Assembly (NCBI GenBank): GCA_964106645.2
Contig: OZ067038.1
DNA from: Podarcis pityusensis
Lineage: Eukaryota
Reading direction: 5' to 3' (one strand)
DNA length: 64,000 bases
Part shown: positions 5,713 to 41,147 of the stretch, one piece after another
How the letters are laid out: the number at the start of each line of letters is the position of its first letter
How positions within the stretch are numbered: position 1 is the first letter of the stretch
Notes under the pieces: generated by a model
What the model saw: the letters and a program-made list of their open reading frames with translations, nothing else
The model's database searches: none
What the model was told of the DNA's origin: nothing
Translations under genes and position numbers: made by a program

Positions 5713-6284
5713 CGGAAGAAGTTCGGAAAAGGGCAACCAAAATGATCAAGGGAATGGAACAACTCCCATGTGAGTGAAAGCTTTGGGGCATTTTAGTTGA
5801 GAGAAACGACAAGTAAGAGGTGACTTGATGGAGGTGTGTGAAATTATGCATGGCATGAAGAAAGTTGACAGAGAAAAGTTTCTCTTCCTTTTTCATAATA
5901 CTAGAACTTGGAGATATCCAATTAAGTTGAACACTGAAAGATACAAGCCAGGCAAACTAAAGTATTTCTTCACTCAGCACATAGTTAAACTATCGTATTC
6001 ACTCCCACAAGAAGTAATGATGGCCACCAACTTGGATGGCCTTAAAAGAGGATTGGACAAATTCATGAATGATGAAGTTATCAGTGGGTACTAACTCTGA
6101 TGGAGATGTTCTGCCTCCACGGCTGGAATCAGTTGGCTTCTGCATACCACTTGCTGGGAATCACAAGTGGGAAAGTGCTGGCCCGGTTTTTAGTTTTTCC
6201 ATAGGCATTTGGGTGGCCACTGTGAGAGCAGAATGCTGAACTAGATGGGCCATTGACCTGATCCAGTAGGCTTTCCTTACATTC
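5713..6284 (+). mobile_element. CR1 LINE, 5'-truncated 3' end (ORF2 C-terminus plus 3'UTR)
   Basis: ORF 5825-6094 (KVDREKFLFLFHNTRT...YFFTQHIVKL...LDGLKRGLDKFM...GY*) is the typical CR1 ORF2 terminus, followed by the 3'UTR gctgaactagatgggccattgacctgatccagtagg. Confidence 0.9.
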
Positions 6285-6351
6285 AGACAATCAGCCCACC
6301 TTCTGCCCTGAATAACTGCCTCTAGTCAGTCACTGAGTAGCTGATCTAGTA

Positions 6352-8744: not shown

Positions 8745-9016
8745 GCACTCCCGTTGCTCGGTCCCAGCGCCTGCCAACCTAGCAGTTCGAAAGCACCGCC
8801 GGGTGCAAGTAGATAAATAGGGACCGCTTACTAGCGGGAAGGTAAATGGCATTTCCGTGTGCGGCTCTGGCTCGCCAGAGTAGCTTCGTCACACTGGCCA
8901 CTTGACCCGGAAGTGTCTGCGGACAGCGCTGGCTCCCGGCCTATAGAGTGAGATGAGCACACAACCCTAGAGTCTGTCAAGACTGGCCCGTACGGGCAGG
9001 GGTACCTTTACCTTTA
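8745..9016 (+). mobile_element. Sauria SINE (Squam1-type), 5'-truncated
   Basis: Core cctgccaacctagcagttcgaaagcac...gtgcaagtagataaatagg and (ACCTTT)n tail; lacks the tRNA head seen in the 44938-45291 copy. Confidence 0.9.
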
Positions 9017-9310
9017 GGTGATGGCCACAGCCACCCACCCACCAACCTATGACACATGTCCCAATGCCTAACCACCAATACCATAAAAGTTGTGACGATT
9101 TGCTACAAGGTAGGCAAAAAACCCAGAGGCTGGGGCCAATCTGCCAAATGGATAAAAACTCCTACCAGGCCCCCTGATCAACCAGGGCAACCAACCAAAG
9201 TCCATAGCAAGGTCAAAGCATAAATATGACCTAAAGGGAGGGTGGGCAGGTGATCCGACGACTCCAGGGAAGCAGAATGAGGCACGGGGCTGCCGCAGCT
9301 GCTTGAATGC
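9017..9310 (-). mobile_element. Internal fragment of the DIRS/Ngaro-like non-coding family
   Basis: Collinear with about 24407-24700 (ggtgatggccac, ccaatgcctaacc, aaagttgtgacga, ggtaggc, cctaccaggccccctg, tccatagcaaggtcaa, ctaagggag). The homology is seen directly; the class is inferred. Confidence 0.6.
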
Positions 9311-10429
9311 GGCACAGAGCTACCAACTTGGTTACCTAATTGTATAAATCCTGTTGCAAGCTGAACAGTCTGGCATTTTTCTCTGCAACTTCAATAGATT
9401 AATGAGTTCTGATATAGATGATGTGTTAGGATGACAACTCATGCTCGTAAACTCATTTCAGTCCTGGTTTGATATTAAAATAGGTCTTAACAGTCTTACC
9501 TACATTTGATGAACTTTGATAAAAATGCATAACTTTTATTTGGACCAAGTAAAATTTATGAGAAGAAACCCCAGGAGGAGTTGAAGCTCCTTTCTCACAG
9601 GAGGAGAAAGGACATTAACTCATTAGTCCAAGGTATGTCATGCAAACCTAGTAGCCTGTAGATGTTATTGAACTACAACTCACATCAGCCCTAGCCAACA
9701 AGGTTATGGGTGCTGTATTTGAGGAAGGATTATCTAGTATTACATGCAGTTACAGTGGCTCTTTCATTACCATCTTGGCTGTGAGTCCTGGAAGACTCAC
9801 TACCTGGCTTGGGAGGGTAGGTCCCCAACTAATTCCAGCTACAAAAGCTGAAGTTGCTGAAGTGGCCAGAGATCATACTCACTGTCTCTTACTGCAGACC
9901 CAGGTCAGCGAACCTGTGCTTCCACAGCTGCTGCCAGCCATAAACCACCACTAGTAGGATTGGCAGCAGCAGCAATGTTCTGTGCTTATGATAATATTTT
10001 ATTCTCTTGCTAATTATCCTGTTTTAAATGTGCATTTTATATTTGACTTCCTTTAGTGTTTTCTTTTGGGGGGAAAAATTAACTTCTCTGCGTTAGATGT
10101 GCATTCTGTAGTTGACCTCCTTTATAATGTTTCATTTTGAAATCTTTAAGATAATATTTTGGTTTCCTGTTAATTATGTTGCTTTGAATGTATACTTTAT
10201 ATTTGACTTTTTTCAGTAACGTTTTATTCTGGAATGTTTTCTTTGATATTTTAATGCAGGCTATAAACTGCATGCATTCCCCCCCCCCCCCAAAAAATAT
10301 ATATAAGGTAGCATAGAAATTAAATGAATAATAATAGCCAACACTGTAAATGGAATCCCTGATCCAGACCATGTGCAGAGGAGAAATGAAAGTGCTCTCC
10401 ACCACAATAAAGAGTTTCAAAGCTTTGGT

Positions 10430-10651
10430 GTCTAGACCCTGAGGCCTCCCCCAAACCAGAAAGGGTCCCCTGGCTGCACGGCTGCTTAAAAGGGGTAAGC
10501 CACACCCCCCAGACAACCGGATTGGGTGGCCGGGGACCGTGACGCAGCCAGGATCTCTCCAATGACGCAGGGCTTAGCCCCACCCCCAGCTGAGTGCAGA
10601 GGGCACGCGGCCTGACCGCAATACCGCCCCACCTGGAAGTGGAGCAGCCTT
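10430..10651 (-). mobile_element. Terminal fragment of the DIRS/Ngaro-like family
   Basis: Minus strand begins aaggctgctccacttccaggtggggc-ggtattgcggtcagg, the same terminal hairpin plus GGT(G/A)TTG(C/T)GGNCAGG motif as the 24 kb and 39 kb copies; CpG-rich relative to flanks; left edge uncertain. Confidence 0.5.
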
Positions 10652-11149
10652 ACTGGAAACAGTCTTAAACTGGTTACAAATAACTGCTACAAAATACAAA
10701 ATAACGCATTGCTCATAAACAAGCAATCAATGCAGTCCAATCTTTTTAGTTCTTAATACAGTTCAATAACTTTCATCTCACTGATCTCAAAGAGAGATCC
10801 TGTCCAGGCAACTTGCTTGTACCACCATTGCAGAGCTTCAATGACCAACTAAGAAACTGAGTTCTCAGGTTTCAGCTCACGTGAGATCGATCTCTGCTTG
10901 GGTTTCCAGGATGAATCATGAATTAACCTGAATGGAAACCTCCACCCTTTTCTTTGTCGCATTTAGCTAGAGATAAACTTCTCTTCCCTAATGCAAACCT
11001 CTCTGCTTGGCATTTTAGATACAATGAATTCAAGCACTGTGTTTTATGCATATTAAATTTATATCTTTAACACTCTTTAGTTAAATTTAGCACAAAAAAA
11101 GGTCTGATATAGCTTACATTATTTATACCCTGTTAGTTAGTTAGCAAAC

Positions 11150-23608: not shown

Positions 23609-24063
23609 CTCTAAACTCGCCATTCTTCTGCTCCCAGCTAGCCACACACAGCACAAGGCCTCATCTTTAAAGCAAATATTACAGGTCTGGCAGAACGACA
23701 TCAATTTCACCTGACCAAATACCAAGCAAAGACTATGAGCTTGTTTCAGCCATGGCAAGTGAGGATGCAACTTTAGCTACTGGCACCTCAGTGCAGACAT
23801 TTTTGTCAGTGTGTCCTTGACACTCCCACTTGGCCCTGACAGATGTCAGTCACATGGTGATTTCCTTACTCTCTTTTGAAATCAGACTACTTTCTGTCAT
23901 CTACATTCTAAGGGGGAGGGGGAATATGACCACACATTCAGAACATAATATTCTAAAATTTCATCATATACTATCCATATGTAATGGAAGACTACTGAAG
24001 CAGTATTGTTTGCTATTTTTGAGCAGTACTGTTTCATTGTCTCAGGCTGCAATCCCAAATACA

Positions 24064-24861
24064 CTTTGTGGTTTGAGGACCCGATCCCCGCTTTGTGGAA
24101 TGAAGACACACAGACACAGAGTATAAGGTTAATGGGCAAGAAAAGACCACAACTTTATTGATTACAGCAAGTGAGAAGGTATTGGCTTAGGCATTGGACC
24201 ACAACAGATTGACTCCACCTACTCGGAGAGGGGTGAGCCCAAAGGGGGTTTATTCACCAGAAGGTGGAGCCTGTTGATGCTAATACAACTATAAGCTCTC
24301 CCCTGATGTCACCGAGGGTCGTGCCATGGGCCCCCGCCACACAGGCATCGGACAGGATCCACGACCGCCGTATTCCTTTAACGGAATACCCAAATTTGAA
24401 GGGGTAGGTGATGGCCACACCTAGCCCTTCCACACACCATCGACACATTCCAATGCCTAACCTAACCGCCAATACCAATAAAGTTGTGACGATTGCTACG
24501 AGGTAGGCGAAAAAACCAAAAGGCCTAATGCCAATTGGAAAAATTCCTACCAGGCCCCCTGGGCAACCTGGGCGACCAACCTAAGGTCCATAGCAAGGTC
24601 AAGAGAAAAACTAAGCCCTAAGCTCTAAGGGAGTGGAGGATGGGTGACTCGCGACGAGAAGGTGGAAAATGAGGCGGAATGGCTGGCACAGCAGTAAGTT
24701 AAACTGCAAACCACGCCCCCTCCAAGCCGCCTGGTTGGGCGCTTACCTGTGGGCGTGGTGCGCCAGCCAGGTGAGTGGGGCAGGGGGCGTAACGCCCCCT
24801 GTGTGATGCAGAAATCGCGTCCTGCCCACAACACCTCCCCTCTTGGATGAGGAGAGGCTTT
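24064..24861 (-). mobile_element. About 800-bp non-coding element, probably a non-autonomous DIRS/Ngaro-type retroelement
   Basis: GC/CpG-rich block interrupting an older short repeat (gctgcaatcccaaatacactt|...|ctagtaagcc...ttacttct). Only CTTT is shared at both junctions; no TG..CA LTR ends, no TIR, no poly(A) tail; homologs at 9.0, 10.5 and 39 kb. Confidence 0.65.
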
Positions 24862-27517
24862 CTAGTAAGCCATATTGCACTTAGTGGGTTTTACTTCTAA
24901 GCAAGCATGTTTATGAGTGCATTGTCAATTATTTCAAAGCTTTTACTTGTTCTAAGCTACCTTGGGCAGGTGCTGACAATAAGCTGGCACAAACACAAAT
25001 TCACAAAGCTTTTGTTTGACAGAATTAATTGGGTATGGAGGCGGGAGTGCAGGTTTGTCATAAGATGCATTTTTGATCCATCCAGATCTCCTACAAGAAA
25101 TTCTCAGCTCTGCAGAAGCAGCATGGATGTGAGGTGTTGTATAAGGTGCCAAAGTAGATATTTCTCATTTTGCTGAACACAATACATGTATTTTACACAA
25201 TTAATGCAAAGAAAGCTGAAGACAGGTTTGTATCTGTAATAAAGCCTCCTCTTCACCTCTCCTCACTATTTCATTCTCATGTTTTCTTTCTTCTTCGTCA
25301 TTTGAAATAATAATAATGTATGTCCATATTTTGGCATGTTTAGAATGTGGTGATTTCTTTCCTGCCATCTGTTCTACTATCCTCTTGTGACATCTATACT
25401 CCAGGGAGCATATGCTAGTCGTTGAGGGCCAGGAAAATGAAAGTTTATTCCTACAGCATCTGCAGAAGCACAGAGATGAAATAGGAACAGGTTAAAAACC
25501 CAGGCATAGGATTAAAGTGCACTGCAGATATATTTCAATGATATTACTCTGTTATTAATAGCAGCTCAGCCGAATATGTGGTTTTATTGCATCTGTTTAG
25601 ATTTCCCACCACTGCTGTCATAAATATCCACACTGTCCCAGCAATCATGATACAATTGAAAGAATAGGGTAGTGAATGGTATTTCTTTCTAATTCAACAG
25701 TTTACAAAATAAAGCCATTGGAGTCTTGTCCTTCCACCCTTCCATTTGCCTATAACCCACTGACATTCCTGGGAAAGATGTATATTGTCACAAAGAAGAA
25801 TTAAATTCCACTCAACAAGTGTGCTTCTTTTTCACTACAGGCTGGGATAGGTGATGGAAAGGAAAAGGTCTTTTATTTGAGCTGTGAGCCAAATATGCGA
25901 TATTATGTGTGACCTTATATTCTCCAAGTACATGCAGTACAAGATAGGCCAAGAGAAAGAGATGTTTTTCAACTTTTTTCAGCTTAAACAAGAACAAACT
26001 ATGTAAGACACAGGTACAGATCACACAAAAAAATGAATAAAATTTGTTGTATGACAATTTAAGAAGAACTCAGTGTGACTGAACTAGCTGGGGCATGTGG
26101 GAATGCATATGTCACAGTTGCATTTGAGAAATGGGAACTAGAACAATGTTTGCTTTAATTCACGAATATGCATGAATGAATTCCCCTTTATTTAAAGGTT
26201 CTGTTGAATTAGCACCCACTCTTCCTCTATAGACATAACAAACTTCTAATGCAATGTTCTCACCTCTGACAAATGCAGCAGCGATAATTCTGGAAACCAT
26301 TGTGCTGACTGCAGTGTAACACATCTCTTTTCACTCAAGTACAAATTCTGCCAAATTCTACCCAAAGCAAAATTCAAGGTGAACATGAGGATTTCTGCTT
26401 GGCACCCAAAGAAATGCCTCCCATTTTCATATCAGCAGTCTGGGGGAGGCTATTGGAGAAAGGCTATCTTCAGGCCAGAGGATTTGCCTTTTAAGGCTCC
26501 AAAGTCCTCTCAACTGGCTGAAGCCTAGAGAAGGTATGCATAAAAGAGGCAGAAAAGGCTTCAGTCTGCTCCCAGCCTTTGTTGGAGTCAATTTCTCACC
26601 CAGCAACCTTGCCACTTTCCCTATGGTATCTGGCATAGGACCACAACACAGGACGCCGTTTCTAACATGGATCACTGAGCACACATTGCTCCAAATGTAA
26701 CCCCATCATAGATCTTTTTATAAAAGCATTATGATATTGGCAGTCTTACTTCCATTTCCTTCCCTAATCCAAACGCCAAATAATAACAGAGCAGATTGAA
26801 ATCAACTTTGAAATTAATATGTACACTTCTCCCCACCACAATAAATAAATAATCAAGTAAGAATTAGATTAGACTATAGCAGAGATGGATACAAGGTTGA
26901 CTCAATCCTTTTTGCCAACTACGACAGGGGCCACCTTGCTGGCAGCCCTCTACTTAACAGCAGCTGCCACCGCTAAATTGCTTCAAGTCTCATGAAGCTT
27001 CACCAAGCTTGGGTTGAAATATAATAAACCTTCACTAAGTCTCATGTCATGAGTCTTGGCTTGGCAAGACTTGCTGAAGGCTTACACTAGGGCTCACTCC
27101 TTCAGTCTGTGGGTGGCTGCTACCTCGTCTAGTGTTCCAGCTGCCACCGGGCCAAATGCCAGCATCCATGGAATGTCTGGCCAGGCAGCAGCCACATCTC
27201 TTTTGTTGAAGCTACCATACTTGAACCAGAAGAGAAAGTGATCCACCAGCAGCTCTACATAGCCTTGAACCATGACTGGCAGATGGCATGGAAATAGGAG
27301 CTCAGCCAAGGTTGCAGTCATTCTGCCAGAGATTATCTTATCCCATTCCTTGGATGGAAACAGAGACATTTCTCACTTCTTCCCTTCAAGTGACCATCCT
27401 CAACCCCCCACTTTTGTACATCCCCTCCCAAGTATTTCCTGTCAGAAGAAGAGCAGTTGCTGCCACCACTATACCAACAGCACACATGCCTTCCACTGTC
27501 CTGAGAAAACCCATTAA

Positions 27518-38884: not shown

Positions 38885-39274
38885 TCTGTGTATGCAAGAA
38901 CATAGGAAGAGTTTGCTGGATCAGGCCAATAGCCCATCTAGTTCAGCATCCTGTGGCCTACCAGATGTTTGTGGGAAACCATCAAGCAGCACTTGAGCAC
39001 AAGAGCACTATTCCCTCCTGTGGTTTCCTGTTAAGTCCGCTCACCTTCAATGGTAGATGGTGTTGCGGCCAGGCCACAGCTGTGCCCGTGATCCAGCAAA
39101 TGGCTGGGTCGGATGGCCTGCCTGCTGGTGATTGGCCAATACTGGAAAGTTTAGGGTGAGGGTTCCCTTGGGAGTGGGGCAGGCCCAACTGGCCAATGGG
39201 CACCTCTTGGGCTTGCTCCCAGGGGGACTAAATTGTGGCCTGTCTGGTCTCTCCTCCCCAGCCTTTTTCATCAA

Positions 39275-39888
39275 CAGTGGTACCTCTGGTTATGAACTTA
39301 ATTCATTCCAGAGGTTTGTTCTTAACCTGAAACCGTTCTTAACCTGAGGTACTGTTGAGACATTGAGTTTGTGCAGTTTTTGGAGTAGACAATTAGTGGG
39401 TTGACAAGAAGCCAAGTTAAACAGAATACGTGAGAAAGTCTGCTTGGAGACAGGGAAGCCTAGCAACAGGTGGTGATTGGCTAAGTTCTTCCTTATAAGC
39501 AGTATGACACAGCAGTTTTGTTGTTGGAGTGTTGAGTTTGGAGTAAGAGTGTGAATCTCGTCTGTGTATATAGTAACTTGTACAAAGCTGTACTCTGCCG
39601 TATATAATAAAGCTAACTAAAATCAAGTTACTCATCAGCAAGTTTTGTTCCTGTTCATCATCCTGGAATTCGCTGATTTGGCAGCTGGTAGCAGGAGTTA
39701 TGGTTGAGATCCATCAGCAAGTACCACTTTAGCTAATGGGGTCTTCTGCTGCTGCCACGCTGCCGGTGTGTGATTTCTGTTCTCATCCTGAGGCAAAGTT
39801 CTTAACCCGAGGTACTACTTCCGGGTTAGCGGAGTCTGTAACCCAAAGTGTTTGTAACCCGAGGAGTTTGTAACTCGAGGTACCACTG
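39275..39888 (-). mobile_element. Tc1/mariner-type MITE, copy 6, interrupted by a solo LTR
   Basis: CAGTGGTACCTC...GAGGTACCACTG|TA; the halves rejoin to the family sequence aacctgaggtac/cactttagctaatgggg. Confidence 0.9.
39353..39719 (+). mobile_element. Solo LTR (367 bp), Copia-like ends
   Basis: GGTAC|TGTTGA...TCAGCA|AGTAC (5-bp TSD, one mismatch); internal TATA-like and AATAAA motifs. Confidence 0.8.
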
Positions 39889-41147
39889 TATAACCAATAA
39901 AGTTGTGGCTTATTTGAACCCATAAATCTATATGCTGTTGTCTTGTCTGGTTATTTCACTCCCTAGGGAATTGTGTGGTTATGGGGTCTTGGTGCGCAAC
40001 TGGTATTCAGACACATTTGTGCCACCAGCTGCGGAGGCAGAGCATAGGATCATGGCCAGTAGCCATCGATAGCCCTCTCTTCCACGAACTTATCTAATGC
40101 TCTTTTAAAGCCATCTAAGTTGGTGACCATTGCTGCCTCCTGTGGGAGCAAGTTCCACAGTTATCTATGCACTACATTAAAAAGTACTTATGTATCCTGA
40201 ACAACATTGAGACAACATTGAGCTAGATGGACCAACAATGTGACTTGGTATGAATTAGCTTCATATCTTTTAGACTTTGACGTATGAATGTAACTCGGCT
40301 GACCCACTTATTTCTACAGCATCTCATGTACTCTTCTTTTGTCTGTGCTTTCTTATTATGCACAAATAGTGCAATCCATATGTATGAGCAAGCCTGGCAG
40401 AGCTAAAAAATAAAATAAAAAGTCTAATTAAAAAGCTTGCCTTATTTTTATCGATGAAGTGTTCTTCGCATCAGGCATAATAGTCAGATAATGGATCATC
40501 ACTCAGGATGAGGGATTGATAAATCAGGAGATGGATATATTCACTTGCAGACTAGAGATGACGGTTTGAAACTTATGAAAGAAAAAAGGGGGAAGCATGT
40601 AGGAACTACAGATTATAAATGGGAGTTGGAATAAATATTCCAAGTAAGGCTTCATTTTTATACAAACTAGGATGATTGCATGAAGTAATTCTCATGCACT
40701 GAAGAGCATTTAAGTCCTCATTTATTGTGAGTGATATTTAAATAACAGCTAGAGATGTATGACTCCACACATCTTTGAGACATTTTACTAATCTTATTGC
40801 AACCACTTTAACTTCCCTCCAAAGTCTTACACATTTTATTTTGTCTAAACAGGATTTTTAAACATGCCTCAGATTTCACTTTAGACAAAAATCAATAGTA
40901 TATTTGATTAGCACAAACATGAATTTCATGACTGTTACAACTGCCTGGAATCTTTTATATATACTATTAGTGCACTCATCTTCTTAGTGTGGATCCTTGT
41001 GGAATCCAAGGTGCCATCCATGCACAAGAGGGAGGCATGAGCAGGCACCCCAAGCTTTGTAGAAGCACAAAAATAGTAAAAACAACCTAGTAACCCTAAA
41101 GTGGACACACACACACACACCTCACAAAAACCAAACTCAATGAAGAC

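Follow-up and report, generated by a model that had tools for sequence, protein, structure and literature searches.

A young and very abundant non-coding element of Podarcis pityusensis that may represent the terminal-repeat unit of a DIRS-order, Ngaro-like retrotransposon

The autonomous retroelements of the DIRS order encode a reverse transcriptase with an RNase H and, in addition, a tyrosine recombinase. A trinucleotide of the NTT type was found at both the start and the end of 23 of 28 DIRS1-like elements, which recombine with an identical 3-bp target and leave no duplication (PMC3266345). An integration model for this junction trinucleotide is available (PMC7192593), and Xenopus families carry TTT at both ends (PMC9210276). 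In Anolis carolinensis, 775 DIRS1-like sequences belonging to 42 families were detected (PMC3266345, PMC7192593). Ngaro elements have split direct repeats arranged as A1-[ORFs]-B1A2B2 (ORF, open reading frame; PMC8547959, PMC9210276), and solo AB repeats of them are known from Cafeteria burkhardae (PMC8547959). SIRE, in turn, is the high-copy A2-B2 unit of VIPER, a tyrosine recombinase retroelement of Trypanosoma cruzi (PMC6681497). Finally, the HINEs, of the rolling-circle Helentron type, are non-coding and reach a high copy number; they have at least two T on each side, no target modification, subterminal inverted repeats of 12-15 bp and a palindrome near the 3' end (PMC4067079). Here we analysed a 64,000-nt stretch of the Podarcis pityusensis genome (contig OZ067038.1 of assembly GCA_964106645.2), hereafter called the window, and describe a repeated element of 796 bp located at 24066-24861 (copy A). 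Judged from its sequence, the element has about an even chance of being the terminal-repeat ('A-B') unit of a DIRS-order, Ngaro-like retrotransposon with split direct repeats and a tyrosine recombinase, and this is the best explanation that we found for it.

The limits of copy A were given by contigs of other copies, whose alignment begins at 24066 and stops at 24861. The first-pass annotation of this DNA had rightly seen a discrete unit here, but had drawn it from 24064 to 24861, slightly beyond the stretch that other copies have in common. Its description as a non-coding mobile element agreed with the repeat depth, the defined ends and the lack of Pfam matches, as none was obtained for 10 ORFs of the element or, in the window as a whole (172 open frames), for the 10 longest ones. 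For the repeat depth, two low-coverage runs of lizard DNA were used, and their contigs were aligned over 23700-25300. The summed depth of the left flank was 10.6 and 71 in these runs, while that of 24078-24887 was 900-78,000 and 8,000-886,000, that is, about 100 to 10,000 times the depth of the flank; these summed depths are not copy numbers and point to hundreds to thousands of related sequences. Contigs that were at least 99% alike numbered 278 and 324 in the two runs. The observed/expected ratio of CpG was 0.48-0.59 within the element vs. 0.12-0.22 in the flanks. In addition, 56% of the sampled 31-mers of copy A recur in runs deposited under several species labels, which places copy A at a distance of about 2% from other copies. 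Copy A is thus a young, recent insertion of a very abundant non-coding lizard element. A protein word search baited with an ORF of the element yielded no further copies, and exact-pattern scans for its conserved words in metagenome and viral contigs gave either zero matches or, after checking by BLAST, chance matches only.

The left flank was also recovered in individual contigs. In one organism, a contig crosses from the flank 23 nt into the element. In another organism, the contig differs from the flank at 14 of 364 sites (3.8%) and its alignment is lost at 24063 with 72 letters left over; this end is compatible with an empty site, the remaining piece being unlisted. Other copies of the repeat that flanks copy A were sought within the window to check the empty site, and none was found. 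To the right of the element, the region 24942-25300 showed zero depth in four runs in which the left flank was covered, and a filter removes some of the records.

Two relatives of the element are present in the window and gave access to further junctions. Copy B lies on the plus strand in two pieces (9015-9299 and 10483-10652), and copy C, a member of a diverged and shorter subfamily that keeps both ends, lies on the minus strand at 39031-39993. The right ends read GAGG-CTTT in copy A (terminal CTTT at 24858-24861), GCAGC-CTTA in copy B and GCGGA-CTTA in copy C, and the contig of a further copy also matches through 24861. Copies B and C both retain CTT(T/A) at this end, which suggests that it belongs to the element and is not a target duplication. 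At the left junction, where copy A has CTTT (24064-24067) with a trinucleotide of the NTT type and other copies read GTT, the sequences were ACAC-TTT-GTGG in copy A, CCAG-TTG-CGC in copy C and ACACAG-TT-GTGG in the further copy. The sharing of CTTT by both junctions, already noticed in the first reading, was verified in copy A. The plus strand begins with T/TGTGG and ends with GAGGCTTT, and the minus strand begins with AAAGCCTC and ends with CCACAAA; neither TG..CA ends nor a terminal inverted repeat were found in the copies examined in the window. Copy C is the one old copy whose target could be reconstructed, as the interspersed host repeat that it interrupts (39994-40200 and 38916-39030) is older and has an intact copy at 5990-6330. 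This intact copy reads ...CCACTTGC|TGGGAA... at the insertion point of copy C, and no duplication is visible. Over the three to five junctions that constitute this evidence, CTTT was doubled in copy A, the right-end CTT(T/A) was constant and copy C lacked a duplication; likewise, NTT was found as CTT/TTT at both ends of copy A and as GTT at left junctions. The CTT right end, the NTT left junction and the absence of duplication together match the published signature of the DIRS order, and these junction sequences support integration by a tyrosine recombinase better than that of a long terminal repeat (LTR) element with a 4-bp duplication.

Several other observations were made at the ends. The left terminus is nearly doubled 27 nt inward (24064-24107; CTTTGTGGTTTGAGGAC and CTTTGTGGAATGAAGAC), and the motif TTGTGG / CCACAA is found at five places of the element. 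Independent insertions have flanks that are alike over about 10 nt, with ATAC.CAGTT on the left and CTRGRAA on the right. As this comparison (24056-24067, 24862-24868, 10653-10659, 39994-40005 and 39024-39030) comprises three insertions, allows shifts and is not significant, the likeness is a hint of what might be a target preference.

In its layout, the element is like a solo AB unit of Ngaro elements (PMC8547959, PMC9210276), since it is a single, scattered, non-coding unit without internal direct repeats, TG..CA ends or a clear target duplication. The likeness shown here is one of layout; moreover, its 796 bp compare with 236 + 152 bp in DIRS-53_XT of Xenopus (PMC9210276), and its copy number is far above that reported for solo AB repeats. 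Similarly to SIRE (PMC6681497), it is a short, non-coding and interspersed unit of tyrosine recombinase terminal repeats under this explanation, and it may be either mobile or a remnant; unlike SIRE, it resides in a vertebrate host, it has an unrelated sequence, and an autonomous partner is known for SIRE only. With DIRS1-like elements (PMC3266345, PMC7192593) it shares NTT at both ends and the absence of duplication at a matching trinucleotide, but its inverted repeat lies in the interior, at 82 and 373 nt from the two ends, no internal complementary region was detected and there are no ORFs. A DIRS1-type architecture was consequently rejected, the sole long inverted repeat being the internal one at 24148-24198 and 24449-24488. 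A complete Ngaro element was excluded as well by the absence of split direct repeats; as a solo AB unit would show no split repeats, their absence excludes the complete element only. Of the DIRS/Ngaro features named in the first-pass annotation, integration without a conventional duplication was in agreement with the junctions, but the internal complementary and split repeats were not found. The A-B unit could be either a solo unit left by recombination or a SIRE-like non-autonomous derivative.

The structure with the best support is a 10-bp terminal hairpin at the right boundary (24833-24858), formed on the minus strand as GCCUCUCCUC-AUCCAA-GAGGGGAGGU. Across copies A, B and C, pairing is found in 90% of the cells, and both partners have changed in three pairs (UA/GC/GU, CG/CG/AU and UA/AU/CG). 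Positions slid along the alignment gave 40-63% pairing, and the observed values were reached by 14 of 500 shuffles. One G.U pair is invariant in the three copies and further G.U pairs occur; because these would become A.C if read from the plus strand, the hairpin is assigned to the minus strand, a strand that the first-pass annotation had not singled out. Part of the fold of the element is in this way conserved with covariation, in three copies and on the minus strand only; the long-range helix showed no visible compensation at its two varying pairs.

The minus strand also contains a canonical poly(A) site at 24104-24159, composed of AAUAAA (24159-24154), a CA near 24135 and a tract rich in GU (24118-24104); some 70 nt separate it from the end of the element. 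Copy C keeps the hexamer, the CCCA and the GU-rich tract, and no family variant of at least 10% was listed in the hexamer. At the other side of the element, the GC- and CpG-rich part (24690-24832) carries on the minus strand GC/GT boxes (GGGGGCGTGG, CCACGCCC), a hairpin (24710-24718 / 24751-24759) and a perfect palindrome (24781-24801), at whose position copy B keeps a GGGC/GCCC hairpin. By its composition, this part may be promoter-like on the minus strand. It includes a perfect consensus of a 5' splice site, CAG|GTAAGC, at 24739-24747 of the minus strand, followed some 115 nt further down by TTAG repeats; the reads listed included none that were spliced.

Other data bearing on the RNA strand were in the same direction. 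The consensus fold of copies A and B gave z values of -5.0 and -5.0 on the minus strand vs. -3.2 and -3.6 on the plus strand. Variants in the family were judged pair by pair and not against a family consensus; among those listed, the majority variants keep the predicted pair in 8 of 13 cases on the minus strand and in 2 of 11 on the plus strand, as exemplified by 24409 T>C and 24220 T>C, both of which give G.U on the minus strand. In RNA reads of relatives, the first mate was on the plus strand in a proportion of 10:1, a bias that corresponds to minus-sense RNA if the library was of the usual stranded type, its chemistry being assumed. The functional RNA is probably the minus strand, by a modest preference.

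The first-pass annotation had described a bulged long-range helix closing a domain of about 340 nt. By sequence reading and with a repeat finder, all the pairings that it listed were located at the coordinates that it gave. The helix consists of three colinear blocks of 13, 9 and 12 nt, complementary at 13 of 13 (24148-24160 / 24476-24488), 9 of 9 (24178-24186 / 24468-24476) and 12 of 12 positions (24187-24198 / 24449-24460) and separated by bulges of 17 nt on the left side and of 7 nt on the right one. When the element was shuffled 1000 times with its dinucleotides preserved, an exact inverted repeat of 13 nt arose 6 times and a colinear exact one totalling 34 nt twice, so that the three-block repeat exceeds chance. 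These exact-word statistics were used instead of the gapped alignment score, which is a poor statistic here (5 of 300 shuffles reach its value). The left arm (24148-24198), kept in copy C, contains AAUAAA and a pair of CCAAT boxes when read on the minus strand, and is the most abundant module of the family, with the highest depth of the element (78,000 and 886,000 in the two runs), several-fold above that of the right arm. The latter (24449-24488) has two CCAAT boxes and AATAAA on the plus strand, and is present in copy B and absent from copy C. AATAAA was indeed found on both strands, at 24477 on the plus strand and at 24159 and 24254 on the minus strand. Two positions of the right arm are variable among the family reads, 24478 (A>C, 50%) and 24479 (T>A, about 35%), with no visible compensation, and the AATAAA of the plus strand (24477) is altered in about 85% of the family depth and in copy B. 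The three arms are perfectly Watson-Crick and hold no G.U pair, and hence they are as much an inverted duplication at the DNA level as an RNA helix. As an RNA element the long-range helix is the weakest part; it is subfamily-specific, and a DNA-level role is as likely.

A 50-nt module at 24147-24197 (CCAAT, CCAAT and AATAAA on the minus strand) is common to another family. The latter accounted for 283 RNA reads with uniform flanks and the opposite read direction, which probably come from one highly expressed locus carrying a copy of the module.

The fold z of the whole element was -5.2 on the plus strand and -5.4 on the minus strand, while that of the 340-nt domain alone was -7.1 and -3.3, respectively. 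The interior of this domain (24199-24448) includes the hairpins 24213-24223 / 24259-24269, GGTCGTG / CACGACC (24317-24323 / 24360-24366), GTATTCC-tttaac-GGAATAC (24370-24389) and 24399-24432; in many related contigs, 24199-24241 is swapped for 7-15 other nt. A second domain (24485-24594) is formed by TGAC.TTGCTA / TAGCAA.GTCA around GGTAGG / CCTACC, with a hairpin CCCYGG-loop-CCRGGG, and its outer stems are invariant between copies A and B. The hairpin with a GCAA tetraloop that had been annotated here contains a U.U mismatch in copy A: the pair 24560/24569 is U.U in copy A, U-A in copy B and C-G in a major family variant, in which T>C and T>G have similar shares.

A number of results weigh against the A-B unit explanation or some of its parts. 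No gene for a reverse transcriptase, RNase H, tyrosine recombinase or SGNH protein was seen beside any of the copies, nor was any found within the window, of which the 10 longest ORFs were compared with Pfam. Repeats of the A1...B1A2B2 kind are lacking in copy A, and no direct repeat within the element exceeds 21 nt; a joint between the right end and the left end was absent among the joints listed. No internal segment matches the circle junction, either in direct or in complementary orientation, the best local match of the reverse-complemented junction scoring 13, with a mean of 10.5 in shuffles and 11% of them reaching this value. With so few junctions, the CTTT of copy A could still be a 4-bp duplication. 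Regarding the strand, the z of the domain alone favours the plus strand (-7.1 vs. -3.3), NTT is read at the ends of the plus strand although the RNA data point to the minus strand, and the direction of the RNA library is an assumption. Additionally, 43 of the 106 pairs of the plus-strand fold are broken in the old copy B, where change has been equally fast at paired and at unpaired sites, as expected from the decay of an old copy. An RNA role of the long-range helix is opposed by subfamily C, which has the left arm only, by the uncompensated changes at 24478/24479, by the presence of two CCAAT boxes and AATAAA in both arms, by the replacement of 24199-24241 in relatives, and by the several-fold higher abundance of the left-arm module, which occurs in another family too.

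These last features bring up two other views of the helix and its domain. In the former, the inverted repeat acts at the DNA level as an inverted duplication of a promoter/terminator module and the long-range helix is a by-product. The two CCAAT motifs and AATAAA of each arm, the abundance and spread of the left-arm module and the lack of G.U pairs speak in its favour, as does copy C, which has one arm only and carries the palindromic ATTGGCCAAT elsewhere. Nevertheless, the complementarity of the arms is still perfect in copy A, which has diverged by about 2% from its relatives, and copy B keeps most of the right arm. We consider this view possible but tentative; it is compatible with the A-B unit as explanation for the whole element. 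In the latter, the 340-nt domain would itself be a functional structured RNA, either a self-cleaving ribozyme or another catalytic or regulatory RNA. The z of its fold on both strands, the multi-branched structure closed by 34 paired bases and the low-level transcription of relatives would fit with this. But neither strand gave an Rfam match at E up to 10 nor a hammerhead core, no pile-ups of read ends were found, and the closing arms are Watson-Crick on both strands and carry the CCAAT and AATAAA modules. Moreover, the right arm is missing in subfamily C, 24199-24241 is replaced by 7-15 nt in many contigs and two closing pairs vary. The undescribed ribozyme contemplated in the first-pass annotation left no signal, the best Rfam hit having 19 bits vs. 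a gathering score of 34 and CUGANGA being absent from both strands. A ribozyme is unlikely, and a functional RNA role of the domain as a whole is very improbable.

For the entire element, one alternative is the solo LTR of an integrase-type LTR retrotransposon or endogenous retrovirus, with U3 (containing the GC boxes), R and U5 on the minus strand and CTTT as a 4-bp duplication. An LTR would account for the promoter-like 5' part, the CCAAT boxes, the AAUAAA followed by about 70 nt to the end, the minus-strand end ...CCACA and the exact 4-bp repeat flanking copy A, and a very high copy number in a solo state is typical of LTRs. However, a 5' TG is missing in both orientations, as is a short terminal inverted repeat; the right ends of copies B, C and the further copy again have CTT(T/A), which a random duplication would not produce, and copy C shows no duplication. 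Of the ordinary LTR that had been named as refuting the first-pass proposal, with TG..CA ends and a regular 4-bp duplication, the TG..CA ends are absent, and CTTT is repeated in copy A but no duplication is visible in copy C; on balance, we regard a solo LTR as unlikely. Quite unlikely also is a non-autonomous rolling-circle element of the Helentron type (HINE or DINE-1-like), whose hairpins would act in single-stranded DNA. The T-rich junctions, the hairpin beside the 3' end of the plus strand, and TTGTGG (24066-24071) facing CCACAA (24827-24832), with the equivalent pair TTGCG / CGCAA in copy C, are what such an element would present. As in HINEs and DINE-1 (PMC4067079), the element is non-coding, very abundant and T-flanked without target modification, and has a hairpin near one end. 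Nonetheless, its subterminal repeat is 6 nt and not 12-15, and its hairpin lies on the opposite strand, since it is fully paired on the minus strand only and its invariant G.U becomes A.C on the plus strand, which is the 3'-end strand. The conserved poly(A) site and the strand-biased RNA fit a retroelement, and no Rep/helicase remnant was seen. Other classes were rejected. A short interspersed element (SINE) was discarded for lack of an RNA polymerase III head (tRNA, 5S or 7SL) and of a tail of the long interspersed element (LINE) type or rich in A; a tRNA scan found no tRNA-like part in the element, and sequence reading and a tandem-repeat scan revealed no tail or tandem repeat at either end. 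This agreed with the first-pass statement that there is no credible ORF, terminal inverted repeat or A-tail, as none was found in copy A. A Penelope-like element was rejected since there is no hammerhead, RNA polymerase III head or tail, and a miniature inverted-repeat or foldback DNA transposon since the arms are internal, there is no flanking duplication and the depths of the arms differ several-fold.

Under the explanation as an A-B unit of a tyrosine recombinase retrotransposon, a circular DNA form would recombine through its 3-bp junction (CTT/TTT) with an identical NTT of the target, so that the trinucleotide would stand on both sides of the inserted element. The minus-strand RNA would begin within the right third, rich in GC boxes, or upstream of it, and would stop some 70 nt short of the left end, at the site made up of AAUAAA, CA and the GU-rich tract. 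The 10-bp boundary hairpin could be a cis signal marking the edge of the repeat for template switching, end definition or protein binding. In the least secure step, the long-range helix would bury the minus-strand AAUAAA and might tune the use of the poly(A) site. In retroviral poly(A) hairpins of the R region (HIV-1 type), AAUAAA is sequestered in a helix of the repeated terminal unit, and this signal is used at one copy of the unit and ignored at the other. The element resembles them in having AAUAAA within a helix, but this helix is predicted, long-range (about 300 nt between its arms) and subfamily-specific. Such a helix suggests a control of site use, which an element with repeated terminal units would need. 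A further proposal, which we hold as doubtful, is that the 0.8-kb unit is itself mobile. It would then be a vertebrate, SIRE-like, helper-dependent tyrosine recombinase retroelement with thousands of copies, active after close lizard species split. The reverse transcriptase and recombinase of the helper would recognise it through cis signals in the minus-strand RNA, namely the hairpin at the boundary and the helix that buries the poly(A) signal.

The two relatives in the window have been altered by later events. The first piece of copy B matches 24405-24692 of copy A and the second 24693-24861; with its overlap, the alignment of the second piece extends over 10471-10659 vs. 24680-24868. Both pieces are parted by a later insertion of 1.17 kb (9300-10482) flanked by about 12 duplicated bp (GGCTGCCGCAGC / TGGCTGCACGGC), in line with what a LINE-mediated insertion would produce. 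The left side of copy B is cut at a tRNA-derived SINE of squamate type (8745-9017) that adjoins the truncation point. Because the DNA upstream is unrelated to the element, the left 340 nt of copy B were lost at or near the insertion of this SINE. Copy C holds two SINE copies in opposite orientation and other DNA, forming a nested complex.

To our knowledge, the definition of ends, the bypass of the first poly(A) site and the circularisation of tyrosine recombinase retrotransposons are poorly understood, with experiments made essentially only on DIRS-1 of Dictyostelium. If the element were an ordinary solo LTR or a Helentron derivative, its description would be a matter of routine repeat annotation. 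Being young, non-coding and hugely amplified, and combining clean NTT junctions with a conserved poly(A) site and a boundary hairpin that covaries, the unit would offer a compact test object for such processes; its presence or absence could, in addition, be used as a marker to compare closely related lizards.

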